From Monocercomonoides exilis PA203 (taxonomy: Eukaryota; Protista; Preaxostyla): 64,000 nucleotides of DNA. The stretch is taken from positions 434,001 through 498,000 of the forward strand of contig LSRY02000003.1 in assembly GCA_001643675.2 (NCBI GenBank). Direction: 5' to 3'. The notes beneath the pieces are model-generated. The model had not been told where the DNA came from. It saw only the letters and a program-made list of their open reading frames with translations, and ran no database searches. Both the position numbers and the translations under genes were made by a program. Below, one piece after another: positions 3,951-33,200 of this stretch; positions within the stretch are counted from its first letter, which is position 1; each line of letters opens with the position of its first letter.

Positions 3951-6900
3951 TCACTCTGCATCATTCTCTGCCATTTCTGTCAATGATTGTATCACCTCAC
4001 CCAAAGTTGGTCTGCCATCTGGCTCATCTGCCCACATCCTCTCTATCAGCTCAACCATTTCTTCTCCTTCGATTCCTTCTATCAGTGGTCGCACTCCATC
4101 TCTCATCATCTCCTGTGCTTCTTCTGCATCACACTCGCTCAAAGGCACTTCCCCTGTTGTCATTTCATGCAGAATCAGTCCAAGTGTGAAAACAATTGCC
4201 TGCTCAATTCCTTCTTCTTCCACTTCCTCATCTTCATTTCCCACTTCTGGTGCCTTCCATCGTTTCATTTCTTCCTTCTCCTTTTCATTCTCCAATTCCT
4301 CTGTCAAAACAAATATTTCATTATTTCCTTCTTCAACAAAGATTGTATATGGGCACAGCTGCCTCGCCATCATTTCCACCCTTTCATCATCAACTGAAAT
4401 CAAATGCTCAAACAGCTCTGCCACTGCCAAAACCACCTGCTTCCCATCAACAACATCCATCGCTCTTGTTCCCAGTGTGAAATTGCCTTGAACAGAATGA
4501 ATCGTTGAATGCAATGTTTTGATGTTATTTTTCTCTTTCTCTCGAAATGGCTTTTTGGCTGATATCACATTGAATGAATGAGACTGTAACACTCTTGCAA
4601 CAGAACCATCCTCAGAAAATGGTAATGGAGGATCCAAATCTGGAAGATCATTTTCGTTCAACTCAACATCGTTCATTCCTCCCAGTTCTGTCCGCTCTTC
4701 TTCATCATTGTCAATGAGAAGTGGAATTTGGCTTGTCATCCCTTCCAGCAGTGTGGATGGCATCTCACTCATCTCAATACATCCCCCATTGTTTTCCCTT
4801 CTCCTCTCAATCTTCTCCATTATTTGTCTTGCTTCTGAATCTGCTGCCTCTGCTTTTCTTTCTGCTTCCCTCAATTTCCTTCGCAAAATCACAACAACCA
4901 CAACAATAACAAACAACAGAATTATTACAACTACAATACAGCCAATAAAGGCAAACAAACTCCATTCAATGACATTTATATAAACATTTCCTCCTTCAAC
5001 AATCCTTTCATCATCTTTTGGAGGAGTAATGCTTGCATTTTTCAGAATGAATGATTGCGTTGATGAAGGAGATTCTGCATTCCCAAACAAAACAGAAACA
5101 CTCACCTCGATTTCATCTCCACAACTGCTGATGAGATCTTTTGCCACACTTCCTTCAACTTCTGTTTCTGACAAGAATCCATTTGAATCAAAATCATAAT
5201 GTTCAATCTCCTTCTCTTCTCCTTTTCTCTTCACAACTCTGAATGACAGATTGCATGGAACAAGAAGCGATCCTTTAAATGTCAGCTTCATTCTGTCTGT
5301 CTCTTCTTTTGCTTCCGCACTCTCCAGAACAGGAATGAAAAATGATGAATCCCTTTCTGAAACAATCCCTTCAAAACCGCACCCATCATTCAATATCCAA
5401 AGAGAAGTGCTATCCTTCAATCCATCTCCTCCTTTCAAACTCATCACATTCAATGTTCCAGAATCTGAACAGATGATGTTTCTTCTCAATGAAGGATATC
5501 CTTTAATGGATGGATTATTGTTTTCAAATCTTCCATCATTAACAGTCATTTCCCCTCCACTCATTGTTATTCCACCTTCTGGTGAATTCGAGATTGTTGT
5601 GTCTTTCATCAAAACAGAACTCTTCTCAACATCCACAACAGATCCATCCCATCTGCACATCTCTTCTCCCTCATTCAAATTCTTTTCATTTCTTTCCTTT
5701 GAACTTCCATCGAAAAAGCAGCTGTCTATTTTCACATCCAAACAATTCTCCACTTTCATCAATTTTCCTTTTGTGGTGTTTGAACTGACTCCACCCATTG
5801 TGCAATTTGTCAACTGAAATGTCTTTTTCATCGACAGGCACGATATCAATGATTCTTCATTTCCTTCAATTGAGATATTTTCTGTATTAAAATCTTCAAT
5901 TTTCAATTCACCACATTCATTAATATCTATCAGAGATGTTTTTATTGTTGAATTGCAAATCGTTAATAAATAAATCACTGATGGAAGTTGAGAAGAAAGA
6001 TATAATGCTGATTCTCGAAGAATAAGATTTGATATAGAGCATTCATCAAGTTGTAATTCTCCTTTTTCCATTTTTATTATGTGAAATGGAATATTTGCAA
6101 ATTCTGCATTAATTCCTTCCATCAGTTGTTTTGTAGTGAGCGAGCAATTCACAATTTCAAGAATCCCTCCCTCTGGTGATATTAATGATTCATGTTGAGA
6201 AATGAAATTCGAATCAAACACAAAATTCACTCTCGCCAATGAGACTGTTCCTGTTGTTGAAATCAAAGAATTCTTTTCACCTGTTATCTCTGATTTCACT
6301 TCAACTTCACACGTTTCTCTGCTCTTAGAGCTCAAACTCATTTCCTTCAAATTAATCTCTTCCTCAATTGCGCTCTTGGTTTCAATGTGCAACAGACTCA
6401 CATATTCCGAAGTCAGATGCATTAGTCCATGATTAATTGAGTTACAAGGAAGTGTGTTTGTTCCGCATTGTCTCTCATTCGTTCCATTCACACTGCTCAC
6501 AACAATTGTGTCACTCTGATGAATCGTCACAAATTCAATCAGATCAGTATCACTTGGATAATCACACTCATCTCTTCCAAATATTGCATTACTGCGATTG
6601 TATTTCCCTTCTCGAAGATCAAATCGAAATTGGCTTTCATTGATCTGAGATGTGATGTTGAAGCATTCAATAAAAATATCATTTCCCACTTTTGCTGTGT
6701 TCGCACTGAATTTCATCCCCATAAATGTGAAATTCAAATCACCTGTTTCCTTTGTTGTCAAATACACTCCTCCTCCTTTCCCTGAACTAATACTGCAATT
6801 GCAATTTGTGATTTTGGAGTCAATCATATTCATTGATCCAGACGATCCCAATGTGAAGTATATTGCACCTCCTTTTTCACTTTTTTCTGCTTTGTCTTCT

Positions 6901-9900
6901 GTGATGTTGCTCTCATTCACAACCAATTCGATCTTTTTCTCACTCTTTGACTCCAAAATGCTTGGCCCATTGTCACTTCTCTTTACTCCTGAAAATGATG
7001 AGTTATCAATGTTGAGATTCATTTCCTCTCCTCCTTCATTAATCTTTGTTGTTGATTCAGGTCCTTTGACCAGAAGAAGGCATCCGCCTCTTTCATTCAA
7101 CAATTTCACTCGAACATTCACCAAATGGACTGAAACTCCAGCATTGTTAATTGCAAAAATGTTGTTTCCAACGTTGCATGATTCCATCGACAAATCGTTC
7201 ACTTTTACACTACCTCCAACCACATCCGCAAACACACAATCAAATCCATTGTTCACTCCTGCTTCTGAATAGAATGAACATCCACTTATCACCAAATCTC
7301 CATTTTTGTTGGAAATAATCGTTTTGGCCGAGTTGTCAAATCCAGATTTCAGTTGGAGTTGGATATTTGTCAATTCAAGATGATCATCATTCACCATGAA
7401 ATATTCCAGTTGATCTCCAATTGCATTTTCAAAATTCAAAGTTGCTTTCACATTCTCTTCTCCCATCTTCACACTTTTTTTAATCTGATAATTGGACATG
7501 TTGAATGAATCTTGAATGATAGTTGATTCTTCAATCTGAATTGTTTTATTTCCTTCTCCCTCTTTCATGTTTTTCATCCCTTTCCACATCGTTTTGCATG
7601 GTTCTTCTTCACTCCCGCATCTTGCAACATCAAATCCACTCGATGAGATAAAAATCTCAAATGAACTGTATGGAATCAGAAACATGAATAAATCTTTGTT
7701 TGAATGCATGTTATCACTTCCAACAAACAAATTGTTATCAGCTATCATTGATGAATAATCGAACTTAAACTCATCGTTTGTTACAGAAGAATTAAAATCC
7801 TTTCCCAAAATGAACACATTCTTCCCTGTGGCTGCATTGTTATTTTCAAAAGTGACACCAACATCAAAGAGAAATGGCTTTTCATCCAAACAATTTTCAC
7901 AATCCAAATACAAGAATCCTCCTTTTCCATTGCCTGATGAAAGTGAACACGATGATGCATTTGTTGATTTAATGATCAAATTTTCATTCTCTTGCAATGT
8001 CACTTTTGAAACACCTCCTTCACCGCTCCCAGTGTTCACAATGTTTGAAAAGTTGCTGTTTTCAAACAAAACAGAAGAAGCCATCACCAATGGAGATATG
8101 ACAAATGAACAATCTGTCAAAATGCATCCCTTCAATGTGCAACTTCCAGTGGTTGTTGTTATCAACGAATATTGAATGGTCGTTGATGATCGAATCTCAA
8201 ATAAACAGGTTTCAAGTTGAAGATCTCCACTCGAAGAGATCAAGGAATTCTTGCTTGGTTCAAATTGACTTGGAATCTGTAACTTCAAAGAATACAAGTC
8301 GAGTGAGGCAGTCGATGAAATAACAGATGAAGTCGATGCTGAATTCCCTTTGATAGCCTCTTCAAAATGAATAGGCTTGTGTTTGGTATCATCTCCCTCA
8401 TTCACACATCCATCAATCACAAGTGCATCTATAAACGAATAAATATCTTCGATTGTCCCTTCATCCCTCACTTTCACTTTCCTTTCTCCAACTGTTCCAC
8501 TTCTGTCAATGTGGTCAATTCCACTTTTCATCGATTCACATGGGAATTTTTCACTTCCACATCCCAATGTGTCATGCCCACCAGTCGATACAGACACAAC
8601 CACCCACTTCAAAGAAACAAGAAACACTCGAAGATCCATTTCTCCATATTTTCCATCTTCCCCAACAAATGCATTCTCATCACTAGAATATCCCGAGTAA
8701 TCAAATGCAAAACGCTCTGTATTCACAGTGCTCACCAGACTGCTGCTCTTCACAAACATGTTCTTCCCAACTGTTGCTGAGCATCCTGAAAACGATATCG
8801 ATGACAGCTGAAATCCTTCTTCATTCAGGCTGCAGTCCAGATAAATCCCTCCTCCTTTTCCTCCATCGCTGGCATCCTCACTCACGCAGCAGGCGGAGAA
8901 GGTGGAATCACTCACCGAAAACGAGTTGGCAGAGGCAGATGAGGCGAATGAGATGCACCCGCCATTGGTGGCAGTCTGTTGGCTCAACTGTTCTGAGTTG
9001 ATGCTGGTCATGGTGCAGTTGGCGAGGGAGAGGGAGAGGGCAGGGGAGGTGGCAGAGGAGAGGACACAGCTGGTGGGGGTGGCTGTGGAGGTGATGTGGG
9101 TGATGTTGGAGGAGTTGAGGGTGAGGGGAGCTGTGAGGGAGGTGAGGTGGAAGATGCTGGGGCTGTTGAGGGCGAGTTGGGTGATTGCTGTGTGGTTGAG
9201 GGCGAGGGAGCCAGCAGTGAGGAAGAAGAGTGGAGTTTTTATAGTTATGGAGGTTGTTCCGGTGATGGTGGTTGTGTTGAGGTTGAGGGAAGGGGAGTTA
9301 TCGGAGAGGTGGAAGAGGATGGGGGTGATGAGGTTTGAGGAGTTGTGGGCGATGGCGAGGGCAGAGACCGTGAGGAAGCCCTGGGTCTGTTGGAAGAGGG
9401 CAGAAGTGGCAGATGGATCTGGTGAAGAAGATGTTGAAGAAGGAAATGAAGAAGATGATGATGTTGATTGTGATGACTGCGAATATGAGTTTGATGGTTG
9501 GGGAATGCCACTGGAGGCAATGGTGGTGGTGGCTATTCCATTTCCTGTGATTTTTGTATTTGGAGAATAAAAAGTGAGTGTTTGAAGAGGAACAAATGTT
9601 GAGGTGAGAAGAGAGAGGGAGGCATCGCTGAAGGGAGCAATGCATCCGAGAGCATACTCCACTGTGGCACAGGGGCTTTGCTGTGTTTTGCCACAGGCAT
9701 CGACATCACTTCCACCATTTGCAACGATTTTATTCTGGTTGATGATTGGAAGCCAGCTGTTGTATACAGCGTTATCAGCTGTTCCAGCATTCCATACTCT
9801 TTTCGATAGGGTTGTTGATCCACAATTCTCGAATGGAGATTGGGTGATGCTGCTGCCATTGAAGAACACATCGTTTCCTCTGCCATTAGTGGCAGTGTTG

Positions 9901-11534
9901 CCATCGAAGAAACAAAATGTGATGAATTTTATTCCGTTCATCCAGGAGTAAGTTCCATCAAAGTAAATACCTGCTCCACCGTAAGTGGAAGAAGAAGAAG
10001 TTAATTTGTTATCGATGAACAGACACTCAACGATTGAAAACTTATTCAGTTGACTTAATGGAGGCCAATAGAATGTTAAAGAACCAGCAGCATTACCACC
10101 AGTATTTGCGATGCACTTGCATTTTGAAAACAGGAATTGACCATTTGTTGAAATTGTTTGTAGCGCAAAATGCCAACAAGTTCCATAAGCGCTTGTTATT
10201 GAACAACCTTCAACTTTATTATCTGAGAATGAATAAACAGAATTTGATCGTGGGTATCTGATACAATTTGCTCCTCCGTCCAAAGCAGAGCAACTTGAGA
10301 AATTTGATTTTATGATATCAATTTTCAACAAATCTTGACATAATAACGCTCCTCCTTCCCAACAACTCGAACAGTTGAAAAATGAACAATACGTGATTTC
10401 GAGATTTGCGTATGTGCAATAAACGAAAAGTGCACCTGCTTGATCATTTCCTCCATTTGAATTATTCCATTCACACCACTCAAAGCGATAGCTATTCAAA
10501 GCAGTGAAGGACAATCTTCCAGGTGATTTTCTGTGAGTTTCATTTCCAACATGTACAACAGCAGCATTTTGTGAAGAGCGTGTTTGGTGGAGGAAAGAGG
10601 CGTTGAAGGCAGAGAGAGAAGTGGATGGGCTGTTGAGGTCGGGGAGGATGGCACCATCGATGGGGTTGTGGGTGTGGAGGAAGATGGTTGAGCGGATGGA
10701 AAGAGATGAATGAAGGGAGAAGGAGGGGATTGAATTGGTAATGATGTTGGTGGAAGAGGAAGAAGAGGAAGAAGTGGTTGAGATGAGAGGATTGAGTGAG
10801 TGTTTAGGAAGGGATGGAAGTGATAGAGGGGATTGGGGAGAGGAGATGTTGGAGAAGAGGGCGTTTGAGAGATGGAGATGGAGGTGGATTTGGAGGTGGG
10901 GATGGGATTGGTGATGGTTATGGAGAGGGGAAGGGGAAGAGGAAATGGAAGGGGAAGGGGAAGGGGAAGAAAAAGAAGATGATGTGGATGAGGATGAGGA
11001 AGATGAAGGAGAAGGGGAAAGGGAAGAGAGGGAAGCAGGAGAAAAAAGGAAGGGCTGGATGAGGGAGATGAATGAGGAGAAAGAGGAGTGGGAGATGGAG
11101 AAGGAGGCAGGGATTGGGGAGTGGGCATGTGGGAGGAGATTGTTTGGGGTGGAGAAGAGGGGGAAGGAGAGGATGGCAGGTTGGTGGGTGATGAGGGAGA
11201 AGTTTGTGAGGGCGAGGGAGGCATAGGCAGAGAGGAAAAGCGGAGATTTTGTTGCCGGGCTGACTTGGCAAGTGGAGAAGAGGATGGCGGCAGCGGAGTG
11301 GTGTTGGGCAGTGAGGAGTGGACAACCGCTGAGAGGGATGAGGTTGAGATGGGTCACACACAAGGATGAATTGATGATATTCAGACTTGTCTCAACACAT
11401 GTGATATGATTGAATATTGTATTTCCAACGTTCTCCGCTTGCCCATTGGGGACAGCGTTTTCTATTGTTTTGCATCTGGTAAGAATACACAACGTTATTG
11501 CCAATAAAAATATTGCTGTCGAATTTCCTTTCAT
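3951..11534 (-). CDS. Giant intronless type-I membrane receptor-like protein (paralog A): signal peptide, Ser-rich and beta-helix-like repeat ectodomain, TM, C-terminal kinase-like (pseudokinase) C-lobe
   Basis: 2530-aa ORF (first ATG 11534). Hydrophobic N-terminus; recurring GGA(I/L)(Y/F), FxxNxA..GxD(V/I)F and CG....PCx(T/S) motifs; TM WSLFAFIGCIVVVIILLFVIVVVVVIL followed by RRK; RWKAPE...VFTLGLILHEMTTGEVP...RPT. Confidence 0.85.
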   Translation of the reverse strand: MKGNSTAIFLLAITLCILTRCKTIENAVPNGQAENVGNTIFNHITCVETSLNIINSSLCVTHLNLIPLSGCPLLTAQHHSAAAILFSTCQVSPATKSPLFLSAYASLALTNFSLITHQPAILSFPLFSTPNNLLPHAHSPIPASFSISHSSFSSFISLIQPFLFSPASLSSLSPSPSSSSSSSTSSSFSSPSPSPSISSSPSPLHNHHQSHPHLQIHLHLHLSNALFSNISSPQSPLSLPSLPKHSLNPLISTTSSSSSSSTNIITNSIPSFSLHSSLSIRSTIFLHTHNPIDGAILPDLNSPSTSLSAFNASFLHQTRSSQNAAVVHVGNETHRKSPGRLSFTALNSYRFEWCEWNNSNGGNDQAGALFVYCTYANLEITYCSFFNCSSCWEGGALLCQDLLKIDIIKSNFSSCSALDGGANCIRYPRSNSVYSFSDNKVEGCSITSAYGTCWHFALQTISTNGQFLFSKCKCIANTGGNAAGSLTFYWPPLSQLNKFSIVECLFIDNKLTSSSSTYGGAGIYFDGTYSWMNGIKFITFCFFDGNTATNGRGNDVFFNGSSITQSPFENCGSTTLSKRVWNAGTADNAVYNSWLPIINQNKIVANGGSDVDACGKTQQSPCATVEYALGCIAPFSDASLSLLTSTFVPLQTLTFYSPNTKITGNGIATTTIASSGIPQPSNSYSQSSQSTSSSSSFPSSTSSSPDPSATSALFQQTQGFLTVSALAIAHNSSNLITPILFHLSDNSPSLNLNTTTITGTTSITIKTPLFFLTAGSLALNHTAITQLALNSPSIFHLTSLTAPLTLNSSNITHITSTATPTSCVLSSATSPALSLSLANCTMTSINSEQLSQQTATNGGCISFASSASANSFSVSDSTFSACCVSEDASDGGKGGGIYLDCSLNEEGFQLSSISFSGCSATVGKNMFVKSSSLVSTVNTERFAFDYSGYSSDENAFVGEDGKYGEMDLRVFLVSLKWVVVSVSTGGHDTLGCGSEKFPCESMKSGIDHIDRSGTVGERKVKVRDEGTIEDIYSFIDALVIDGCVNEGDDTKHKPIHFEEAIKGNSASTSSVISSTASLDLYSLKLQIPSQFEPSKNSLISSSGDLQLETCLFEIRSSTTIQYSLITTTTGSCTLKGCILTDCSFVISPLVMASSVLFENSNFSNIVNTGSGEGGVSKVTLQENENLIIKSTNASSCSLSSGNGKGGFLYLDCENCLDEKPFLFDVGVTFENNNAATGKNVFILGKDFNSSVTNDEFKFDYSSMIADNNLFVGSDNMHSNKDLFMFLIPYSSFEIFISSSGFDVARCGSEEEPCKTMWKGMKNMKEGEGNKTIQIEESTIIQDSFNMSNYQIKKSVKMGEENVKATLNFENAIGDQLEYFMVNDDHLELTNIQLQLKSGFDNSAKTIISNKNGDLVISGCSFYSEAGVNNGFDCVFADVVGGSVKVNDLSMESCNVGNNIFAINNAGVSVHLVNVRVKLLNERGGCLLLVKGPESTTKINEGGEEMNLNIDNSSFSGVKRSDNGPSILESKSEKKIELVVNESNITEDKAEKSEKGGAIYFTLGSSGSMNMIDSKITNCNCSISSGKGGGVYLTTKETGDLNFTFMGMKFSANTAKVGNDIFIECFNITSQINESQFRFDLREGKYNRSNAIFGRDECDYPSDTDLIEFVTIHQSDTIVVSSVNGTNERQCGTNTLPCNSINHGLMHLTSEYVSLLHIETKSAIEEEINLKEMSLSSKSRETCEVEVKSEITGEKNSLISTTGTVSLARVNFVFDSNFISQHESLISPEGGILEIVNCSLTTKQLMEGINAEFANIPFHIIKMEKGELQLDECSISNLILRESALYLSSQLPSVIYLLTICNSTIKTSLIDINECGELKIEDFNTENISIEGNEESLISCLSMKKTFQLTNCTMGGVSSNTTKGKLMKVENCLDVKIDSCFFDGSSKERNEKNLNEGEEMCRWDGSVVDVEKSSVLMKDTTISNSPEGGITMSGGEMTVNDGRFENNNPSIKGYPSLRRNIICSDSGTLNVMSLKGGDGLKDSTSLWILNDGCGFEGIVSERDSSFFIPVLESAEAKEETDRMKLTFKGSLLVPCNLSFRVVKRKGEEKEIEHYDFDSNGFLSETEVEGSVAKDLISSCGDEIEVSVSVLFGNAESPSSTQSFILKNASITPPKDDERIVEGGNVYINVIEWSLFAFIGCIVVVIILLFVIVVVVVILRRKLREAERKAEAADSEARQIMEKIERRRENNGGCIEMSEMPSTLLEGMTSQIPLLIDNDEEERTELGGMNDVELNENDLPDLDPPLPFSEDGSVARVLQSHSFNVISAKKPFREKEKNNIKTLHSTIHSVQGNFTLGTRAMDVVDGKQVVLAVAELFEHLISVDDERVEMMARQLCPYTIFVEEGNNEIFVLTEELENEKEKEEMKRWKAPEVGNEDEEVEEEGIEQAIVFTLGLILHEMTTGEVPLSECDAEEAQEMMRDGVRPLIEGIEGEEMVELIERMWADEPDGRPTLGEVIQSLTEMAENDAE

Positions 11535-18239: not shown

Positions 18240-21200
18240 TTACTGTGAAAAGCAAAGAATAACGTTACGAAGCATTTCAGAAAACAAGTGATAACAACAT
18301 GAAGAAAATCGAGATGATAAAAAGATATTCACAGGTGCTAAGGAATTTTTAAGGAAGTCTAAAATTTCTGAAAACTGTTTCTTTCTTAGCACAATGCAAG
18401 AGGCCTCTGATTCGCCCATGTTGCTTGCTGTTGATGATGAATGTTGATTGTGCTTCGACAGAACGAGACAAAGGAGAATGAGAATGTGAGAGAAAAGAGG
18501 AGTGATTCCAGTGTGAAACTTGACAGTCGAAGAAAGAATTCCTTCTTCTTCTACAAGATCAAACATTGTGGTATTGCGAATCGACGAATTTGAGAAGGAG
18601 TCAAAGCATTGGACCACTGAAATTATAAAAATAAAGGAAATAAGAAAAGAAAGATAGAAAAATTGAGATGATTTGGAAGATGATGGACAAATAGAGATTA
18701 TGAAAAGCAACAACAAAATTATTTCAAAAAGATATATAGCAAAAACATGAAAGCAAAAACATGAAAGCAAAAACATGAAAGCAAAATAACGTCATATCAT
18801 TTAAAAAAGTAGCCATTTCAAGAAGTTAAAATAATCATCAACAATGATTTAAAATTTTATATTTAAAATTTAAATTTAAAATAAAAATAAAATATGAAAG
18901 AAAATTAGAAAGAAAGAAAGAAAGAAAGAAAGAGGCATACGTTCATCATTAAGTGAATCCAGCACAGCTGTCTGCACTCTCTTGCATTCCCTTTGGAGCG
19001 AGTCATCTGAATCCAGCAAGTAGCTGACAAGCAGCAAAATACGTGAGCAAGCAACAGAATGCAACGGATGGAGTGTTTCGAAATGAGACAAGAGAGCATT
19101 CACAGTCGATCGAAGGAGATTTTGAACTGAAGGAAGAGAGAGAAGAACTTTCTGCTCTTTCTTAGCACCGCTTGAATTACCAGAAGCCTGTGCAGACGAA
19201 TGATAGATCAAAAAGAGCGCTGCGGTGGCAACTGCAATGCGCGCCTCAGCCACAAACACAGTTGGCAGCTGATTTGCAGAAGGAAACAGTTTTTCCTCCT
19301 CACAGCCAATTCCTGCTTTCTTCAGAACAATCTTCGCCCGCTTGAAAGAAGACATCCAGTCTGCTTTAACATCGTCGTCTGTCAAGTCAATCACAACCAA
19401 ATGATCGGGGCGTGACACCGTCTTGAGGGCAGACTGGTCGATTTTCACTTGTTCTTGTGCAGTTTCTGCCAATGAAACATCTGCTCCTCTTTCTCTATCA
19501 AATTCCTCGCTTTCATCTTTGCTCTCATTCTCAAAGTTGATCAGCCAGCTGATAAGCTCCACAAGATCCTCAAACATCATCGACGCTGCTTCTGAAAGCG
19601 GAATTTCGCCTTCATCTGCCTCTTTCTCTTCTGCTTCATTTTCATCTTCTGCTGTGTCTTCCTTCCTTTGTTTCTGAAGGCAGAACGTAAGCAGCGCAAT
19701 CAGATGATGCAAAACATTGATGCTGTTGTGTGTCTTTGGCTTCTTTTCTGGTTTTTCACATTCGCAAACAGAAATCTCTTTATTTCCTTCTTTTTCTGGT
19801 TTGTTCAGAATGTCAACACATTCCCCTTCTCCTGTAAAGTTGTACGAGAGAAGAGCAAGCTCAATGCGCGAGGCAGCTGAAGAGAGAGAAAGAGGTAAAG
19901 ATGAAGGAGAAGATGAAGATGAAGATGAAGAAGAAACAATTTCGGATGCTTTTGAGAAAGACGAAGGCAGATAAGATGAGGCAGAAAGGGAGAAAGAAGA
20001 AGAATTGTTGTACAGAAGTTGCCCAATTGGCGAAATAATTCCATTTGTTGAGAAAAGATTGCTGAATGTCTGAAGAGATGGAGAAATAGAAGACAATGAA
20101 GAAGAAGCAGAAGCAGATGAAAGATCAATTGCTGATGGCTTAGACACAACTGGCGCAAGAGCAGATTGAGCCAGCACAGTTTGTGACAGCTCCAAAATGT
20201 GTTGAATTGTCTCATCAATTTTTTGCTCTTCGTCTTTTGACAGCTCAAAACATGTCGATTTGGCTGATGTTTTCTCAGATTCATCACTTTGTGAATCAAA
20301 ATTAATGTTTGATTTTGGAGATTGAACAGATCCTGCGATTGATGATTCGTTTTCTTCTGCTGCATCTGTGGAGTTGGCTTCTTGTTCTTCCTCGTCCTCT
20401 TCCTCTTCTTCTTCTGTTGAAAACTGTTCAGACAGACACTGCAACAATCTGGCAATTGCAAAGAAGAGTCTTCCCAACAGAAGTTGCAGCTGCGACAGAA
20501 CTAAACAGATATCACTGCAGTTAATTGCATTTGTTGTGAATGGAGTATCGAAGGAAGAAGAAGAAGAAGAAGAAGAAGAAGAAGAAGAAGAAGAAGAACA
20601 ATTTGCTGAGTTTTGATTTATCAGTTGTTCATAATCAGGCAAGTTCTGTTTCAAAGATTCGGAGTATCTCATCAACTGCTTCAGTTGCGCAAAGAACAGC
20701 TGCAATTGAATGAAAGATTGCTCTTCTTCAAACATCTCAAATTCTTCCTGTTTTGCATTCGCTTCATTTGAATCATCGACCTTTGAATTATCACTAACAA
20801 ACACATTCATCAGTGCTTTGAGTATCTTCGACAGGAAATATTGTAATCCCGTTGACCCTCTTTGTCTTGCTGTCACGCTTTCCTTGATTGTGTATTCATC
20901 GTTTGACAGCTGCACATTCGACGAATCAGCAGCCGCCAGTTCATAAAGCGAGGACAGCAGAAGAGAAGCTGAGTTGAGGCAGTGGATGATCGATGAAAGG
21001 AACACAGAAACAGAACCAGAAAGGAAAGAGCCAGACAAAGCACATCCACTTGATGACTGTGAGAATGATAACAGCATTTTGGAGTTATCCCATTTGAGAA
21101 CGGGGAATAACAACAAAGAAGAAGAAGATGAGGGAGATGATGATAATGATGATAATGATAATCCCTCTTTTGTTGTTTCACTGTCTAAATTGCACAGCTC

Positions 21201-24200
21201 ACTTCCATCAACAACAGATCCCCCAGCATTCTGCACAAGTGAGGCAACAGAGTTGAGTGCAGAAACCGAATCGAGAAAAGACAAGTAGCTGTTTTCAGAC
21301 TGCCAATCGAGCGAAACCAGGCGAGTTGGATTTGTGAGGCTGCTCAGTGAGAAGTTAGCATCGTCTTTTTCAGTGGTATCAATTGCCATTGCATTTCCTT
21401 TTCCTTCTCTCTCATCAGCCATCACATTCTGCACATTCATTGAATCGTCACTCACAATCGTCATCGTCTTTTTTAACAGCGGGTCATTTGCATGTCCTGC
21501 AGGCAAGACAAGTGAAGATCCCATCTTTTCAGCCAGTAAAGAGAGAACAAGCGAGCGGAGAAGATGAAGCTCCACAGAAAACGGAGTCAGAATGAGCGAC
21601 TTTGACACGCGGCGGAAGGTCAGCTCAAACACAGACAGAACTGGAGAGCACAGACGGAATGGGAGAAGTGCAGAAGATGAAGATGAAGAAAATGATGATG
21701 ATGGAGATGATGATGAAGATGATGATAAAGGAACAATTTTAGTTGTTGATGTTGTCTGCTGAGAAGCAGAAGAATCAGGCGAAAGGGATGAAGGTGTCAT
21801 TCCTTCATCTGTGCTCTTCTTTTCCTGAATAGATGGCGAAAGGGCTCTGTCATTCTGTGTATCAGCCATTTCGCTGCTTTCCATATCTCCTCTTTCTCCA
21901 CTGCTTTCGCCCGGCTCAGCTGCCATCAATCCTTCTTCTCCTTCTCTTCCTTCTCCTTCTCCTTTTCCCTCTTCTTCTTCTTCTTCTTCTTTCTCTGCAT
22001 CTGTCTCATCCATCATTGCAGGCGTCAGCTTCGCAAATGGGTCTTCTTTGACCAACTCTTCGATGTTCTCTCTGAGAATCACCGATCTTCCCTTCACAGC
22101 AACAAACAGCGGTCTGCAGACAGATTCAACAATTCCTTTCTGTTTGGCATCGTCCAATGAAGAGGCCTCAAAACAGAGCGAAAGCGACACAGTGCGCGAC
22201 GCCTCGAACACCAGCGACAGAACAGTCGGCGAGACAAAGTGGGGCATAAGGGCAAAGGAAGGCAAAAGCGCTGGGAATGTACTTGCGAACTTCTCAGGAA
22301 CACTCTCAAAGAATGGAAATGCTGATGAAGAAGCGTTATCTCCTTCTGCAGCATCTTTATCATTGATTCTTCTTTCATTGAGAATTGACGCTTCGGGATA
22401 AGCAGCCATCAGAAACGGATACGGCGCATCGGCTGTGGAGCCGAGGGACTTCTCCTTCGAGCTCTGAATGGAAGACAGCATTGCAGGTGTGATTCGCGAA
22501 GACACCAGCATCTCCACTGCACTGTCATCAACTGAATCATCCGACTCAGCAGACTCAGCACACTCACCAATAGTCTGCCCAAAAGCATCCTGCAATTGAA
22601 TTGACCCCATTTTTTGAGTTGCCTTTTTATTTCTCTTTTCTTCCCTCTTGTTTGCAGAGCCCACAACTTCTGTCACGCTCTGCAGCACCGACAGCATCGG
22701 CACTGCACTCAGCGGGTCAGTCAGCCCATCGCACACAATCTGCGCCCCGAGTGTCTTCGTATTTCCTGCTGAAGAAGAAGAAGAAGAAGCATGTGTCACT
22801 TTCAAGGCAGGGGTGGATGCGAAGAGGAGGCGGAGCTGCGAAACGAGAGAGAGATAGTTCGGCGAGCGTGTAGTGGGACTCGAAGCAGAGGAGAAAGAAG
22901 GAGTGATTGCCTGCACCGCAAAGGCTGCTTCTTGTATCGTGTTGACGGTGCGGATGTTTTCAATGTTCAGTTTTGTGGTCAGTTCTGTGAATGACTTGGA
23001 AGATGACAAAGAAGATGAAGATGAAGAGAAGGATGATGATGATGATGAAGGAGAAGTAGAAGGAGAGTAACGATTTATTGAAAATCCGCTTGAAATTGAA
23101 GGGTGATTCATCACAGAAAGAGGAAGAGGCTTAGAAACCGTCTTCGTCTCCACATTTCTGAATCCCATTGCGTGTGCCAAGTCAGCCAGATTGAGATACA
23201 GCGAGAGATGGAGTGTGGCCACAGACGGGGCGAAGGGAGAAGAGGAAGACGAAGAAGCTGAAGTTAAATGAGGGTTTTGATGCACAGCTCTGCGGATATC
23301 CTTTGTGGCTGTGTAGAAGATTGACTGGAACTGCTCAGCAAATGACGTTGGGTGATTGATGTGCGATTCTTTTTCTTTTTCTTCTTCTTTTGTTTCTTTG
23401 GTCTCATCTTTTGTGGTTGAAGTTGAGTCATCTGCTTCTCTAATGTTAACCGTATTCTCATTCTTCTCATTTTCTTCTTTTTCTTTTTCTTCGACTCCAG
23501 TTTCTCCTGAAATGCTCTTTTCCCCATTCGTTTTCCTTCCTTCTTTCATCTCGATCAGAATCGCCATGTGCTTCAAGGAAGACAAAAGAAGTGAATATGC
23601 AATGGCTGCAGAGGGAGATTGTGTGTCCATTTGAGCAGAGCCAGGCGAAAGAGCAAAGAGAAGTGCGAAGAGGGACAAAATACGATCAGTTGCTGAGATT
23701 TCAGAAGGAGGAGGAGGAGGAGAAGAAGAAGAAGATGATGATGATGATGATGATTGTGGCAATGGTGAAAGAGAAGAGGTAGATTCAGAAGGTGATGAAG
23801 GTGATGTAGAAGGTGAAGGAGAAGGAGAAGATGAAGGAGAGGAAGGTTGCAATGGAGAAGGAGAAAGTGATGATGGCGATGGTGAAGATGAAGAAGAAGA
23901 AGGCGTATAAGCAAAATGATTCGAAGCTCCGTTTTGGCCCGACTGCTGTTGGACAAGCTTCACTTTTTGCAGCTTCTTCATCTGTTTTTTGCTCATTTTT
24001 CCTAAACACGAAATCGAATTCGCTCTATTTTTGTCTTTGCTCATCACAAACGTGATCACACCGCTGCACAACTTGCTTAGCTCTCCTTTTGTTTGAGCGA
24101 TGGACTCTTTCCCTTTCATCAGAAGTTGCATTGCACGTGAAGCGACTTCTGCATCTCTGAACAGAAGAGCGAGGCTGAGGAGGAGACGCTGCGGGATTTG

Positions 24201-27200
24201 GGAGTGGAAGAGAGAAAGGAGAGAGAAGAGGAGCTGGAGAGGAAGTGGGATGAGGCTGGATAATGAAGAGGAGGAAGGAGAAGAGGAAGAAGCTAACGAA
24301 AGAGAAGCAGAAGAATCAACAGAAGAAGAAGGAATTTGAATGAACGAGGTGACTTCACCTGAGGAAAGCAGCCAAAAGACAGCCGACTTCACTTGGCAAC
24401 AGACAGAAAATGATTGGCCGATGAGAAGGAATATTTTGGACTGCAGCGACTGATAGCTGAATGAGTAGAACATCAGGGCAGAGGCAGAGGAGGCGCTTAA
24501 ATGCAAACGAGAAGGAGAAATAGAAGAAGAAGAAGAAGACTTCGAAGAAAGCAGAAGAGTCAAGTTCTTAGCTGTGTTGAGGGTGTCTGAAGCGAGCGAT
24601 GATCCGATTGCAGAGAAGCCGCAGAGGATGAGAGAGGAGGCGATGAGGGTGCAGTCAGAGAGGAGGGTGGAGAGGAGAGTGTTGGTGTGGGAGGAGAATG
24701 TGAGTTTGTAGAGGAAAGAGGAGGAGGAAGTAAAAGAAGAAGAGGAAGAAGAAGAGGAAGATGATGATTTTAATGAAGAATTGAAGTGTTGGATGACTTC
24801 TTTGAGTGTTGATGTTAAAGGCATCAATGAAGACAATATATTCATTTGATGGTTCTCTTCTTCTTTCTCTTCTACTTTCTTTTCATCATCATTCACACCT
24901 TCGCTGAAGAAGACAGAAGAAGCAGCAGAGTCTCCTTCATTCACAAACATCCACAAAAGCAGACTGTCAATCCCCAGAAACTGACCCCATCTTCCTCGAA
25001 GTTGATCACCATTGACTTTTAAGAGAGAAGAAGAAGAAGAAATTGAAGAAAAAGAAGAAGAAGATGTTGAAGATGAGGAGGATGTTGAAATAGATGAAGA
25101 TTCAACAAGTTTTGTCAGCTCCTTCAAAATTGTTGCTTTCACATCGCATACCAACTGCTGTGAAAGAGTATTTGTTTCTCTTTTATGCGAATGTTCTTCT
25201 TTGCCAAGTGACTCAAAAGCAGAAGAACTCATCAGAAACAGAATCGCTTTGACCAGAATGGAAGATCTAAGCATCGCAGCTATATTTTTGTGTGTAAAAT
25301 TTTCAGTACAGTAATTCTCAATCACTTTTGTTTTGTCTTCATCTCCTTTTTCTCCTTCTTCACCTTCATTCTCATTTCCATTTTTTGATTCAACTGCCAT
25401 TTTTACAATCTTTTCCAGAAGCGGAAACAGACAAACAGCAAAGAAAAGAGCAAAAAGCGGTCGCCCAATTCGAAGAAGAGAGCGAACAAGGGCAATTCGA
25501 ATGAAGAACAAAGAAGAGATGGAGCGATGTGGAAGAAGATGGATAAGATAATTGAGGGATGGGTTGAAATATGATTCTGAAGAAGAAGAAGAAGAACTTT
25601 CAATTTCTCCTCCTTCCTTTACCCCCTTCTTCTTCATCTTCCTCCTCCTCATTTCCTTCTCACTCACATCTTTGATCATCGCATCCACCAATGAAAACAG
25701 AGCCAGCGACGCATAAAACGTGCTTTTCTGATGCAACCCGTCTCTTTCGCAAGCGATGCAATGAGAAAGCAACGCAGAAGGAGAAGATGCTGACGAATAA
25801 TGATTCAAATAGAGAGAAGTGTGGACAATAGACGAAGAAGCGCTGTTTGATGACAGACCAGAAAGAGAAGAGGAGAAAAGAGAAGACGGAAGCGCAACTG
25901 AATATCCAGAAAGCGAAGTGAATGCTCGTCTTCTGTCGTATTTCGAACGATGAATGCGTTCTTTGCTTTTCTTGTTCTCATTTTCACTCAATTTATCCGA
26001 TGAATCTTTCTCTCCTTTTCCTTCTCCTTCTCCCTTTCCTTCTTCTGTTTCAACTTTATCCTCCATCTCCCTATTCTTCGCCGATGCCTCGACAATTCCT
26101 TCAATATGATTGTGGAACTGCAGTTTGCGTGCTTCTTCCTCAAGCGAAGCCACAAAGCTCAGCGAAGCAGGCGACGATGACTCGTAATTGAGAGCAAACT
26201 GGGAAATAGACAGAGAACGGAGCAAGTAGAAAGGAAAGAGCGTTGGGGAGATGTCAGGAATGAAGGAGAGAAGCAGAGAAGACGCGGTGGACGGAGAGGA
26301 AGAGAGAACGCGACGCAGTTTGGACCAGTCGTATGAGGATTGGACGACATCTTCGGCTGTGAGGGATTCCGGTTGAGTGTCAGATGAATCAAAGGAGTTG
26401 GATAAAGAAGTTGTAGAAGAAGAAGATGATGATGATGTTGTTGTTGTTGTTGTTGTTGTTGAGGCTGTTGAAGTTAATGAAAAGACCTTTGAATTAGCTG
26501 ATTTCTCATCAATTTCCATTGTTTCCTTGCATTTTTCTCCTTCCACTCTTTTCTCTTCTTCTATTTCTTTCTCCTTCTCCTTCAAAGCCTCCTTCAGCTG
26601 CTTGTGGAACACATTACAATGAACAAGCCGGGCAATGGTGTGTTCGAGTGCTGCTCTGTTGATCCATGCCTGTGGAGATGTTGGGATGAGGGCAAGAGAC
26701 GCCTCAATGCAGTTGTGGCAGGCTATCAACAGCCAAACGAGAGAAGAAAAGAATAAAGAGGAAGAGGAAGAAGAGGAATTAGAAGAAGAAGAAGAAGAAA
26801 GGTTTTCTTCACTTTTCTGAGTGTTTTCAAAGTGAGAGCAAAAGAATGAAAGAGAAGACAGAAGAAAAGATGTGTACATGTTCAGGAAAAGAGAAGAAGA
26901 CGATGCATTTGGTGAGAAATCTTCGCAAATAATACTCGTAAAATGGGAGGAAGATGAAGAATGAGCCTGCAAATGCAGATTTTGCATGTGTTGATTGGAA
27001 GATAGCTTGATCGCAGTTTGGAAGGCTCTGTTTGCTGCAAAGCAGAATGAAACCAATGGAGATGAATAGTCAACACTACAATTGCAATTGCATTCTTCAT
27101 TCATTTCTGAGCCATCTCCAACAACTTGTGCATCTTTTGATGTGTTTTTGAACGCCTTCTCGAAATTCTCAATGCGCTCTGCTGAGATTGGTGATGCTTC

Positions 27201-30200
27201 CATCAGTTCATCATTCATCTGTTTGAGATATTTCTCGTCAAACTGCTCCCAGCAAGCATCATTATCATTATCATTCTCATCTTCTGTCTCTGTTTGGTGG
27301 TTTTTGTGATTTCCAATGGAAGAAGGCAGTAAAAGTCTGAGAGAATGCATTGTGCATAAAGTGAGTGCCAGTAGCAACCAGCAGCCAGGGTTGTGGGGAG
27401 ACATCGCAATTGCAATGAAACAGCAGCGCAGTGAAACAGACAGAAGAGATGAACAAATATAGCGCTTGGAGATGAGAGAAAGGAGGTCTGAATGAAGAGA
27501 AGAAGAAGAAGATTCAGAATTTGATTCAGACAACAGAGATGACAGCAACTTTGACGTGTCAAATGGGAAATTGACATGTTCCCTATTGTTTTCATGCAGA
27601 ATTCTGTTGATCTGCAATTTGATAGAGTTTATGAGACGAATAGCCTCGAAGCGGAGAAGCGATGAAATGTCAGTCCAAAGTGTGAGTGTGGATGAATACA
27701 AAGGCGAATGAACGATGCTGAGCAGAGCGGTGATTGACTTGAAAAGGAGATGGGAACGAGAAATGGAGGAGAAAGATGAACTGGATAAAGAAATGGAAGA
27801 ATAAGAGGAAGAAGAAGAATTAATCAAAGACAATTGCATCTCTCTTTGTTGATTTTGTTCCAAAGATTGGCATTCTTCAATGAAAGAACCAGAAAGCGAC
27901 AGAACGCCAGGCCTCTCATCTGAATGCTTGGCAGCGACGAATGCGAAGTCTGCAAGATACTTCTGCAGCTGATAGAACAAATGGTCAGGAATCTCAGAAT
28001 ACGAAGAAGATGCCTCTTCATCTCCTTCTTGTTGTTGTTGTTTTCTTTGTTCTTCTTTTCCTTCTTCACAATTTGCATTTCTATTTCCTCCTTCAATCAA
28101 CACTCCATCATCATCCTTTCTGTTTCTATTGATCTTCCTCGTCTTCAGCATCCTCTCACAAAACACAATCCCGTCCATTGCTGCATCTCTTGCCCAGCCG
28201 AAGAAGCCGTTTGGCACAATGAAGAGATGAATGTGTGTGTGGAGGATTCGGCATAGGCTGCTCCACAGAATTGTTTGGAGTGGGTGGATGATGAATGGCG
28301 GAAGAGCAATGTTTGCAAAGGAATAGGGAAGCGTTTGGAAGGAAATGAATGAGAAATCTTCATTTGTAGAAGAAGAAGAAGAAGAACAAGACGCTTCTGA
28401 TGCCTTTTGGATCTGCAAATTATCAGAATTTAAATGTGTTTCTTGTTTTCCCTCTTCCTCTATTCCATTTCGTGCCATTCTATTCTTCTCTTCCCTTAAA
28501 TTCTTCATTGAAAACCTCTGCACTTTCGTCAGATCTGCATCAATCATCTTCATCGCTTTCACTGCCTCTGACGAACGCCCTGCTTCAGCCATACAAATCT
28601 CATACCGGATTTGGAGAAGCACATAAAAGAAGAACAAAAGAGAAGACTGCTCAAACAAAGGAATAGAGAAAGCGGAGGAAGAGGAAGAGAACAAAGCAAC
28701 AAAGGAGAGGAGAGAACGAGGAGTGAATGAGGAAACAAGAGAAGAGGTGATAGAATTGACTGAGGCTTGCGAAAAGTTGAAGTCTTCAACTTTGAGTCTC
28801 AAAGAAGAGGAGGAGGAAGAAGAGGATGATGATGATGAGATAGAAGGAGACTTTAGAGATTCTTCTATCTGAATATATCCAATTCGTAATGCGTCTTCCA
28901 GCAGTCCATTCACACACGGGTGCTCATTTCTCAATGTTCCTTCTTTCTCTCCTTCTTTTCCTTTTCCTTCTTTTCCATCCTTCTCAATTCTATTTGTTTT
29001 CAAATGTATTTTCTGATCATTTGCATTATTTCCTTCCACAGCACTCAACATCTGCACCCTCTCACAATGTTCAGAGGCGTGGCGATAAAGTCTCATCGCT
29101 GCTTCAATTTTGCCTTCCTCTTCAAATTCACACCCAAGCAGCGCAGACAGCAGTGCATCCCAACCGAAATTCGATGGCGAAAGACGCAGAGAAAGAGAAA
29201 GGGTGTTTGAAGGGAGAAGAGAAGAGTAGGAAAGGAAGGAGTTGGTAGAGGATGCGCGAGAGGAGGAAAAGGGAGATGCAAATGAAGAAGAAGAGGAGGA
29301 GGAGGAGGAAGGTGGAAGAAGAGCAGAGCAGAAAGAAAGAGGAGAATGAAGAAAGAGAACAGATGACTTGTTCATTTCATTGAATATCGGAATCAGCTTC
29401 ACAACTTGCTTGATAATCTCTTCAAAATGATTGTGTTCTAATGAAACAGCATTTCCTGCATCTTTGTTTATCATCTTATTCACCTGAGAATCAAGAGCTG
29501 AATTATCATTGCTGTTATTGATATTATTACTATTATTATGATGATGATCTTCCGTTGCCTTCATCTGCCTTCTGCTTATCAAATCGAGCGAAATGGCGCG
29601 CCAGCCCCATTTCAATGAGTGCGAATGCTTCAGAATGTGCAGCAAGAACACAACAGAAGAGACAGAAGGCGAAAAAGAGGAGAGAATTTCATCTTCTATG
29701 ATGTCGAGTGATGAAAGAGTTGCATTAAAGGTGTTCAAAACAGATAAAATTCCATCTTTTTTGCTCATTTCTTCACCATATTTTTCATTCGAAAGCAGTT
29801 TTTTCACGATTGCAGAGGCAATTGACAGCACATCTGACAAGCGATCAGTCAATTTGAGAACAGAAAGTGTCTGCTCGCCGCTTTCTTCGTCTTCTGGCTG
29901 AAGTCGATTGGCTTCAGAGAAGAAGGAAAGGGCAGAGCGGAGAGAAGATAAGGATTCGTTGATGTCTGTGATAGGAGAGGAAGAGGAAGAAAATGAAGAG
30001 GAGGAGGAGGAGGAGGAGGAGAAAGAAGAAGAAGAAGAAGAAGAAGAAGAAGAAGAAGAAGAAGAAACAATTGAATTTGCCCCTTTAGTTTCACTCTGGC
30101 TTTCACTTTCTTTCATCTCATTAAGTTTTGTAAAAGGCAGGCTTTTATACAACTTTGATGAGAAGAACAGGAGAAGAGAAGAATAACCAGCGCCAACAAG

Positions 30201-33200
30201 AGCACGTGTATTCCCTTTGACCAACGAAAGTGCAGAGAGAAACAGCAGTTGTGGCTGGTTTTGTGGAAGAGATGGGTCAAATTGAGGGAGATGGCTTATT
30301 TTGCAGTGAGAAGAAGGGTGAAATGAAGAATTATTTGAGGTTTTGTTGGATTGAAGAGGAGAAGAAGAGTATGAAGAAGGAAGAAGAAGAGAAGTGTAGC
30401 GACGCATGAGGACGAGAATACCAGCTCCGATGAGAGAGAAAGAGAGGAGGGAAGACAAATGTGTTGGGGAAGAAATGAAAGGAGAGGAGGAAGAGGAAGA
30501 AGAAGAAGAAGAAGAAGAAGAAGAAGAAGAAGAAGAAGAAGAAGAAGAAGAAGAAGAAAGAAGTCTTTCTTTTCTTTTGGAGTCTGAAAGGACATCAATT
30601 GCGATTGAGAGAGGGTTGCGAAGTGATTTGAGGGAGAGAGAAGAATAAACATTTCTGATAGCAGAAGAGTTGCTTGATGCAATGTTAGTGGCTGATTCAG
30701 AGCTTAACTGTTGACTTGCAGAAATTGAAGAAGAAGAAGAAGCAGAGGAGGAAGAAGATGATGTTGTTGATGCTTTATCGAAAATTTGATCTCCCAATAA
30801 AACATTCATCGAAAGAGTGAACAACATTTGTATTCTGTTCAAAAGCAGTGGTTTCAGAACATAAACTCCATCAAAGTTGTTATTCTGGTTAATTTCTTTT
30901 TCTCCTTCTTCCTCTGCTTCTTTTGCTTCTGTCATATGTTTTTCATCACATTCATTATCACAACTATCTTTGTTATTCCCCTTTCTGTTCTTTCTGAAGA
31001 ATATTGCTTTCAACACAGAAGAATAAAACGAATTGACAATCTTTCTGTTGTTAGCACCTTCTGACACATGACATCCATTGAAGTTGCTTCCATTTGCATT
31101 GGAATCGAATAACTTTCTTTTTTCATTCATATTTTGATCATTTCCATTGCTTTGCCTAAGTTTTGAGCTATCTTGCTTTGTTTTTTGGTTTTTGGCCTTC
31201 TTTTCTTCGCAAATTTCTTCTTCTTTCTTTTCTATTCCGTTTTCTTCTTCATTTTCATTTTCCTCTTCTTCTTCCTCTTCTTCCTCTTTATCTTCGTCTT
31301 CATTTGTAAATATCCAACCAAAATTCGTGTTCTGATGAAGAAACAGCGACAAGTTGAGGAAAATCGAAAGAGGAGGGCTTCTCAGCTGAGAAAGAGGAAG
31401 CAATCTAACAGACTGAATGAGAGATGAATGAGAAATGGAAGAAGAAGAAGAAGAAGAAGAAGAAAATGATGATGATGATGAAGAAGTATCATTATTTTCT
31501 TCCTCTATTTCAGTCAAAACCACCAGCGGAACGGTCTCTGCCCCATTTCTCAGCAAATAATCAGCAGAAAGATTGTTCTTATGAGAAGAATTAGAATAAG
31601 ATGAAGAATAAGAAGAATTGCTATTTATTTTGTTATTACCATTATTATTCAAATCATCCTTATTCTGCTGAGCCAGCACATTCACTCCAAAAGAAACCTT
31701 TTTGTTCAGCTGAGTCGGATGGCAGTCTCTGAACAGGGAAAGAAGGCCACACAAAACAGACCAGGCGAGAAGAGAAAGAGATTGAGCAAGATAGAAACTG
31801 AGAGGGCGAGGGATGAGTGAGCCTATGAAAAGAGGAGAAAATGAGGAGGAGGAAGTGTTTTGTGGCTTTTCAGATAAAAATGATGTTTCAGTTGTTGTTT
31901 GAGGAGTTAATTGACTTGTAAATTCTCCATTTTCATTGAAAACTTCGTGACTTAGCTGATTTTCATTCAATTTGTCCTTCTTCATGCATTCAAACGCCAA
32001 CTCAAACAGATTCTCTATCGAAATCTTGTTAGACAAATTGCCTGCTCTTGTATTCACCGAAGATCTGTTGTTTGAAGAAGAAGAAGATGACGATGATGAT
32101 GATGATGAATCAGAATCACAAGAATCACAAGAAGAAGAAGAAGAAGAACAGCATTTCTTATTGTACTTCCCAAACTTCTCCATCTCCACTCCCACCATCT
32201 CTGCAATCATCACCACAGCCTCGCTGAATGCAGCGATTGCCATCAGCCAATGAGCCAGATGCGTTGCCTTTGAAAAGCAATGCATGCCAACCTCTATCAG
32301 CCACACGAGAGAAGGCAGCTGTGTCTGCTGATAGGAATACAGTAGGCAGAAGAGAGGAGAGCGGGATGAAAGAGGAAGCTGAGAGGAAAAAGAAGAATTG
32401 GAAGAACTTGAAGAATTAGAGGAAATTGAAGGATTCGAAGGATTTGAGGTATTTGTGGCTGAAGTGATGGTGGAGGGCTCAAGAGGCCGGGGAAGAAGAG
32501 GGAGAGGCAATGGGCCACGGGAAATGAAGTGAGAAGAAGGAGAAGGAGAAGAAGATGATGATGAAGGTGAAGAAGAAGTGATTGAGGAGGAAGGAGAATG
32601 AGAAGGAGGGGCAAAAGAGCTGTTATTGGTTGTGAAATGGAATGGAAGGTGTTTTGAGGAAGAAGAAGAAACAAAAGGAGAGTAATGAGACAGAATGCAG
32701 AGGATGCAGAAGAAGAGGTTGGAGTCTGTGCAAAGTTCGGAACAAACATTGGAAGAAGAAGAGAGAGAAGAAGAAGAAGAAGAGGAAAAAGAAATTGAAG
32801 AAGAAGAAGCAGAATTAGAAGTAATAACCAAATTTGATGAATTACCATTATTATTATTAACATTACTATGGCAGCATTTCTCTCCATTCATCCTCAGCAA
32901 CAATGAATCAGAAGGCACAATATCATCTGCCCCACACAAACAAGGCTGGTTGAAGTCAGCTGCGTGCAAATGGAAGAAGCTGGGCATCCATCTTTCAGTA
33001 GGAAGAAGAGAAAGAAGCTGCAAAGAAGAAGAAGATGATGATGATGATGATGAATTTGAAGAGGAAGAAGGAGAAGAGGAAGAAGAAGAAGAAGAAGAAG
33101 CATCCGTCAGTGATTTCGCCTGTTCTGGCAGTAGGAACAGCGAGTGATGGTGTGTTTTGCTCTTCTCCCAGCCGATTTTGTCTCTGATTGAGGCACACTG

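Follow-up and report, generated by a model that had tools for sequence, protein, structure and literature searches.

A patchwork ectodomain core joined to different leaders and tails in two receptor genes of Monocercomonoides exilis

Two receptor genes and their common core

The stretch of DNA considered here (the window) comprises 64,000 nucleotides of Monocercomonoides exilis PA203 (contig LSRY02000003.1, positions 434,001 to 498,000, corresponding to G000:C25:434001-498000 of the genome that was searched, 82.3 Mb in 101 contigs). It harbors two receptor genes that share a patchwork ectodomain and carry different ends. Gene A (MONOS_3808, P0121; 3951-11534, minus strand) extends from its first ATG at 11534 to the stop codon within a frame that is open to 11543, and codes for 2527 amino acids (aa). 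Gene B (MONOS_3800; 47063-55183, plus strand) codes for 2706 aa. In translation the two products have the same architecture, namely a signal peptide, an ectodomain of about 2200 residues, a single transmembrane (TM) helix and a cytoplasmic tail; the product of gene A is thus predicted to be a giant single-pass membrane protein. The public models of 1946 aa (A) and 2236 aa (B) begin 581 and 470 residues after the first ATG, respectively, and therefore omit the signal peptide as well as a low-complexity, C/T-rich N-terminal part. The latter (A 11016-11316, B 47356-47656) has a translation rich in Ser, Pro, Leu and His and is, at 89-95% identity between A and B, better conserved than most of the ectodomain; it may be coding, 5' untranslated or regulatory.

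Both genes are members of the largest gene family of M. exilis, the 'protein tyrosine kinases', for which 332 predicted genes, 320 of them TKL, are given (PMC6759080; PMC8767320). The family is taken here to number about 800 genes, a large share of the genome, and every strong match that the two tails and the ectodomain have in the database is an M. exilis protein. In Pfam, no profile matches the ectodomain of A at E <= 1, and a scan of the entire gene B at E <= 0.1 yields the kinase match of its tail as the sole result; precomputed matches to PF13229 (right-handed beta-helix) exist for a few other family members (P0052, P0103, P0139).

The part that A and B have in common is an ectodomain core of about 6.4 kb (A 4986-11399, minus strand; B 47273-53821, plus strand). 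According to blastn, global and three-way alignments, it is a patchwork of blocks with 65-95% identity, with blastn values of 81% for a stretch of 2.6 kb and 86% for one of 3.16 kb. One part of it is an internal cassette (8218-8902, minus strand), in which A is 44-59% identical to both B and a sister gene with the tail of A (L002), whereas B and the sister gene are 82-99% identical to each other. Across A 8902-8530 the identity of B and L002, two genes with different tails, reaches 94-99%. Elsewhere along the gene the closest pair among the three alternates in a three-way sliding comparison, a pattern that suggests recent and repeated ectodomain exchange between tail lineages. The L002 gene is MONOS_3814 (L061 and L002, G000:C25:414591-423000), a whole-gene duplicate of A that lacks about 2 kb matching A 6451-8530; ectodomain length therefore varies through loss or gain of whole repeat modules. 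In the last 400 ectodomain residues A and MONOS_3814 form a supported clade together with B.

The junction at the end of the stalk

The preliminary description of the locus had reported more than 60 identical nucleotides at the stalk end of A and B, a loss of similarity at the codon after EGGN, and tails of about 345 and 455 aa. These claims hold. In the global alignment the identical run measures 70 nt (A 5054 to 4985, minus strand; B 53753 to 53822, plus strand); it codes for the stalk end ...SFILKNASITPPKDDERIVEGGN plus the first base of the following codon, ends one base past the EGGN codon, and its 3' edge constitutes the junction. The blastn alignment terminates at 4985 in A and 53822 in B, beyond which identity drops to 17-50%, the background for a gapped alignment, and the tails that follow comprise 344 aa in A (3954-4985, minus strand) and 453 aa in B (53822-55180, plus strand). 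The run as such is no special signal, since longer ones exist elsewhere in the alignment: the other identical runs measure 99, 83, 81, 79 and 70 nt, so that the one at the junction ties for fifth-longest.

The discontinuity itself is far beyond chance. Over the final 1470 nt of the ectodomain, A and B differ by 0.28 synonymous substitutions per synonymous site (dS); in the alignable part of the kinase-like C-lobe dS reaches about 1.9, a saturated value. For comparison, dS between A and its own whole-gene duplicate is 0.27, equal to the A-B value for the ectodomain. Nucleotide diversity (pi) between genes with A tails and genes with B tails equals pi within a class at all codon positions of the last 300 ectodomain codons, and the two tail classes separate only within about 20 codons of EGGN. 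A conserved island in the stalk as an anchor for recombination was considered and rejected, as diversity climbs toward EGGN (third-position pi of 0.36-0.46).

The junction codons were compared in 18 loci. Gene A joins its stalk to the TM helix by the linker VYINV (4971-4985, minus strand), whereas its sister genes carry KN(D/N)NGNVNM between EGGN and the helix; compared with the sisters, 18 nt are missing from A between two GGAAAT repeats. The stalk variant ...ILKNASITPPKDDERIVEGGN is common, almost base for base, to a cluster of tail-A genes (L001-L005) and a cluster of tail-B genes (L031, L032, L034-L036) on the same chromosome. Other tail-A genes mostly have ...GDEIISKGEDK-IEW at this position. 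The GT that follows EGGN in A, which the preliminary description had raised as a possible splice donor, is not one: the open frame leads through 5 further codons to the class-A TM helix (IEWSLFAFIGC), which is kept in the other tail-A copies examined, and the 15 nt between EGGN and this conserved helix are too short for an intron.

Leaders and the 5' junction

A second, mirror-image junction exists at the 5' end of the core. The blastn similarity of A and B starts at A 11399 and B 47273, just before TSLNIIN, which is 48 codons past the start in A and 73 codons past the start in B. The segments upstream of this point are unrelated. The leader of A (11400-11534, minus strand) consists of a signal peptide and a spacer (MKGNSTAIFLLAITLC...PNGQAENVGNTIFNHIT), and the leader of B (47063-47272, plus strand) is a 73-aa segment of the form MKATHSFFALLLLVVNC...IAERQYHQKWNKEMQEGKISIADKN....

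The leader co-varies with the tail. The 48-aa leader of A is found in A, the L002 gene, L003, L004, L005 and L009 (6 of the 7 tail-A genes with this N-terminal type), and the 73-aa leader of B in B and 11 further tail-B genes on eight contigs (12 of 12 examined). Among these 18 genes with a leader of either type no crossed combination of leader and tail is observed (Fisher's exact test p = 5e-5, uncorrected for relatedness). Leader identity is 44% within a type and 17.5% between types. A further tail class with an A-like TM and juxtamembrane part (class C, see below) likewise bears an A-like leader.

The same holds for the flanks. Homology between gene A and the L002 gene (MONOS_3814) begins at least 260 nt before the ATG and extends 700 nt beyond the stop codon, whereas the homology of B to both genes is restricted to the internal segment 47273-53826. 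The 3' flanks are similar in 150 within-class pairs of genes; between classes similarity is found in 7 of 900 pairs and never abuts the stop codon. A shared 3' anchor between the tail classes was rejected on these counts. The data favour the reverse of the preliminary description's proposal that signalling modules had been swapped onto a shared ectodomain: with leaders that co-vary with the tail and class-specific 3' flanks, the ectodomain would be the mobile part.

Tail classes and their distribution over ectodomains

The tail of A (class A) is present in at least 85 genomic copies with 50-88% identity, in frames of 2200-4400 aa, and in about 54 annotated proteins. For the tail of B (class B) there are 1429 first-look candidates in the genome, and the 93 matches among them that were scored all show 69-98% identity; in the database, 529 proteins match this tail at E <= 0.001. 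Two further classes consist of basic tails. Class D (about 18 genomic copies) joins the class-A TM helix to a basic tail that ends ...KKRKKKKKRNQKR...LLDAG; class C (3 copies) has an A-like TM helix and juxtamembrane motif (SPLLEKMQSQTPLLMDG), followed by a basic tail that ends GIDAF. Neither of them has a kinase-like part or a Pfam match. Examples of genes with non-kinase tails are P0176, P0177, P0178 and P0235 (e.g. G000:C10:1500922-1501665) as well as P0250, P0252 and P0253 (G000:C15).

All four classes occur on one type of ectodomain. The best 120 of 571 matches to the last 400 ectodomain residues of A are followed by 98 class-B, 12 class-A, 3 class-C, 3 class-D and 4 truncated class-B tails, and the ectodomains that carry the four classes are 75-90% identical over 400 aa. 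Conversely, genes with tails of 75-79% identity may have ectodomains that are merely 30-50% identical. The two properties combine into a four-gamete pattern: the ectodomains pair L001 with L031 (84%) and L012 with L056 (52%), with 32-38% identity across the pairs, whereas the tails pair L001 with L012 (76%) and L031 with L056 (77%).

Ectodomain trees are incongruent with tail class, the kind of comparison that the preliminary description had suggested. On a 60-locus tree of the last ~500 ectodomain residues the tail class changes at least 11 times, and at least 5 of the changes are forced by well-supported branches. On a set of 27 rows that includes deep ectodomain types, monophyly of tail A is rejected by the approximately unbiased (AU) test with a log-likelihood difference of 396 (p = 2e-83), and the tail-class label is no more clustered on the ectodomain tree than after shuffling.

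The cytoplasmic tails as half-kinase domains

In gene A the junction is followed by the TM helix (IEWSLFAFIGCIVVV...; 4884-4970, minus strand), which is also used by the class-D tails, and by the cytoplasmic tail with its stop codon (3951-4883, minus strand), which includes a kinase-like C-lobe at 3981-4298. The corresponding module of B (53822-55183, plus strand) consists of the linker EKKS, a TM helix at about 53834-53905 and the 453-aa tail, with a kinase-like C-lobe at 54737-55033. It had been stated that the two tails share only remote motifs. This is correct for direct comparison: BLASTP detects 98 aa of the C-lobe at 33% identity plus a composition-driven match of the TM segments. At the level of class profiles it is too strict, as hhalign aligns the two classes collinearly from the TM helix to the C-terminus (99.4% probability, 27% identity), and the tails thus appear to be homologous, not unrelated.

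The Pfam family PF07714 matches tail A with an E-value of 9e-9 (profile positions 157-258) and tail B with 7e-10 (161-258), both above the gathering score. Both tails carry the C-lobe of the kinase superfamily, from the APE motif to subdomain XI, together with its conserved Arg. The class profiles match the kinases TAK1, EphA2, TNNI3K, MLT and BTK only from WxAPE to subdomain XI; N-terminal of APE neither class has a match to a Pfam or PDB profile. The HRD and DFG motifs are missing from the class consensus sequences at collinear positions, and motifs of the catalytic loop and of the N-lobe are not detected. On these grounds both tails are putatively dead, pseudokinase-like half-kinase domains.

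A structural model of tail A, with a predicted local distance difference test (pLDDT) score of 61, consists of a TM-plus-juxtamembrane helix (residues 4-65), a disordered stretch, a few strands and a helical lobe. Foldseek relates it to TKL kinases and the MLKL pseudokinase over 190-220 columns (TM-scores 0.32-0.38 by query and 0.38-0.51 by target). The model of tail B has a pLDDT of 46.7, and its C-lobe alone is confident.

Within a class the mean column identity of the tails is 66-69%. The ratio of nonsynonymous to synonymous rates (omega) is 0.16-0.26 in the tails versus 0.22-0.38 in the ectodomains, which points to purifying selection on each tail class and to a constraint stronger than that on the ectodomains. 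We note three annotated proteins with aberrant class-B tails (P0222, P0210 and P0217), one of which joins the TM helix directly to the last ~70 residues of the C-lobe, while in two the N-terminal half of the tail gives way to an acidic, low-complexity end; these may be decaying copies or faulty gene models.

Exchange tracts and breakpoints

Tracts of near-identity occur within the classes. With positions counted from the junction, B and L034 are 96-100% identical from -400 to +550, spanning the junction, and A and L002 are 100% identical from +888 through the stop codon to +1440. B and L032 are 98-100% identical from about -150 to +1300, a tract nearly equal to the tail module, and their 3' flanks are unrelated. 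L032 (G000:C25:514609-518964) is a truncated family member with a 965-aa frame, located 16.6 kb past the end of the window. Its tail is 99% identical to that of B at the nucleotide level (dS = 0.028) and its ectodomain remnant only about 84%; L032 looks like a recent copy of one tail module.

The preliminary description had expected breakpoints to cluster at the EGGN codon. They do not. Switches of the nearest neighbour are evenly spread over 23 class-B and 15 class-A loci, with no peak at EGGN; for class B the bins at -150 and 0 contain 30 and 23 switches, compared to 25-34 elsewhere in the ectodomains. A breakpoint hotspot at this codon is thus rejected, also because tracts within a class cross the junction. 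Within the classes, tail identity and ectodomain identity are weakly correlated (r = 0.34 and 0.54).

One further pair concerns tail-B genes on another contig. L056 (G000:C10:985124-989452) and L057 (1004851-1009179) are located on opposite strands about 20 kb apart; with 100% identity in both ectodomain and tail, the pair resembles the two arms of a large palindrome.

A model of stable ends and a shared ectodomain pool

The reading that we favour, with a probability of roughly 75%, is that of lineages defined by their ends, a pool of ectodomains that these lineages share by gene conversion, and two cliffs at the limits of inter-lineage homology. A and B would derive from two old lineages, each of which keeps its own leader, TM helix, tail and usually 3' flank, and the ectodomain-coding middle of about 6.4 kb would be a pool common to the lineages. 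This middle part would be overwritten patchwise and repeatedly by non-allelic gene conversion, with donors that are often neighbours on the same chromosome. Conversion requires homology that flanks the tract on both sides and cannot enter the diverged ends, which would leave a cliff at either end of the core, before TSLNIIN (A 11399, B 47273) and after EGGN (A 4985, B 53822); selection possibly contributes to the maintenance of both. The 5' junction, the end-to-end homology of A and L002, the co-variation of leader and tail, and the class-specific flanks together identify the ends as stable markers and the middle as the part that is exchanged. EGGN is then the point where homology between the lineages ends, and A and B are not the products of a direct swap, as both tails come from old classes.

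The preliminary description had preferred recombination over gradual divergence, and on this it is borne out. If A and B were ordinary duplicates whose tails evolve much faster than their ectodomains, the homology and collinearity of the tails at profile level would be expected, but the same cliff is present at synonymous sites (dS of 0.28 versus about 1.9), tails within a class are 65-88% conserved where the ectodomains are only 30-50% identical, and the tails are, judged by omega, the more constrained part. The jump in dS and the four-gamete pattern refute this explanation, and the rejection of tail-A monophyly by the AU test agrees. Also very improbable is an artefact, be it an assembly chimera of paralogs or an unrecognized splice site translated as part of the frame. 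In favour of it, the family is rich in repeats and coincides in part with the 'unclassified repeats', about 29 Mb, of the assembly (PMC8767320), and the junctions, like both loci as a whole, are taken from the assembled sequence, which also counts against our own reading. Yet both frames are open through the junction, the 15 nt between EGGN and the TM helix of A leave no room for an intron, the same combinations of ectodomain type and tail class, with the same junction, recur at many independent loci with unique flanks, and the assembly was built from Nanopore long reads (PMC8767320).

A more serious competitor, although we consider it unlikely as the general explanation, is that whole TM-plus-tail modules move between genes at a preferred stalk site, EGGN. 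One ectodomain type on four tail classes is what such cassettes would produce; the B/L032 tract nearly equals a tail module and lies in unrelated 3' flanks, and in class D the class-A TM helix is followed by another cytoplasmic part. Swapped cassettes, however, do not account for leaders and tails that co-vary over more than 6 kb of shuffled ectodomain, and the classes have no common 3' homology that could anchor a replacement. Nor do switches peak at the junction: the B/L034 tract crosses it, and the 5' edge of the B/L032 tract is located near -150 instead of at EGGN. Cassette swapping probably contributes nevertheless, for example to the module-sized B/L032 tract and the hybrid class D.

Several observations weigh against a reading in which gene conversion within the ectodomain explains everything. 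The B/L032 tract shows that tails are copied as well, at least within a class, and class D, with its combination of TM helix and cytoplasmic part, requires at least one join beyond homology-limited conversion. The linkage of leader and tail is based on 18 genes, and 5 of the 6 cases of the A type are close duplicates on one chromosome. The tail-A gene L006 bears a third type of leader, and genes with very different ectodomain types have other N-termini, which lie outside the leader scoring. On a shallow, star-like set of 40 rows the AU test is not significant (p = 0.067).

Relation to known receptor and surface-protein families

The closest functional analogue of the A/B family, by likeness and not by homology, would be the paired receptors of vertebrates (Siglec-11/16, CEACAM1/3, KIR, LILR), in which gene conversion preserves the likeness of the ectodomains although the tails are different (Siglec-11/16, PMC5701461; CEACAM, PMC2832619 and PMC5112662). 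The A/B family has the combination of similar ectodomains, different tails and probable ectodomain-limited conversion. As in the paired receptors, near-identical ectodomains are placed on different TM and cytoplasmic parts, conversion would be confined to the ectodomain, with a sharp end of similarity near the membrane, and the genes are close together in clusters. In contrast to them, the M. exilis ectodomains exceed 2000 residues and are not immunoglobulin domains, and the tails are half-kinase or basic non-kinase parts instead of immunoreceptor tyrosine-based inhibitory motifs or charged TM segments. With hundreds of members, the family also has at least four tail classes. The M. exilis receptor genes have no introns, so that the sharp boundary is not an exon boundary and exon structure cannot account for it.

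The TMK family of Entamoeba histolytica is a looser parallel. It is a large lineage-specific family of single-pass TKL receptor (pseudo)kinases with many truncated copies (PMC2880585; Beck et al. 2005 as cited in PMC10463195), and the M. exilis family is likewise large, lineage-specific, of single-pass TKL type and from an anaerobic gut protist. The TMKs differ by CXXC-rich ectodomains of far smaller length and by kinase domains that are in many cases complete; the TMK literature covered, which is not a full survey, describes no exchange of ectodomains between lineages of tails and no chassis of leader and tail. For M. exilis itself, the portions of the literature on its 'protein tyrosine kinases' considered here provide counts and chromosomal positions and describe no architecture, tail classes, mosaicism or junctions (PMC6759080; PMC8767320). 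New with respect to these accounts are the linkage between leaders and tails, the 5' junction, the count of tails with and without a kinase part on one type of ectodomain, and the absence of a hotspot.

A third point of reference are mosaic surface-protein families that are diversified by segmental gene conversion, such as Plasmodium var, Trypanosoma VSG and Giardia VSP. They share with the M. exilis family the patchwork of identity tracts among many paralogs and a variable outer part on more conserved ends. The M. exilis ends differ in that they fall into several discrete classes instead of one conserved anchor, and neither antigenic switching nor expression of one member at the exclusion of the others is indicated for them. 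The organism is considered a commensal (PMC6759080).

One outer binding part may be coupled to different intracellular outputs through the tail classes. A possible, still tentative extension is a system akin to paired receptors, in which one evolving repertoire of giant ligand-binding ectodomains is presented, by way of gene conversion restricted to the ectodomain, on at least four chassis (two half-kinase and two non-kinase basic ones) that selection keeps distinct, such that a given external cue (bacterial prey or gut surfaces, for instance) would be routed to different responses. If true, the logic of the KIR, LILR, Siglec and CEACAM receptors would have been invented independently in a flagellate without mitochondria. 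The evolutionary model of a stable two-ended chassis with an exchangeable ectodomain is distinct from this functional idea of one ligand with different outputs; it would extend ectodomain-restricted gene conversion from vertebrate immune pairs to a free-standing unicellular eukaryote with intron-less genes. For annotation we suggest that the ~800 genes be classified by leader and tail instead of overall similarity.

Neighbouring genes

The genes next to A and B are ordinary ones, namely Rit1, a glutaminyl-tRNA synthetase and a CDC45-like protein. Between A and B lies an open frame of 5020 codons (18876-33938, minus strand) with no Pfam match at E <= 0.001.

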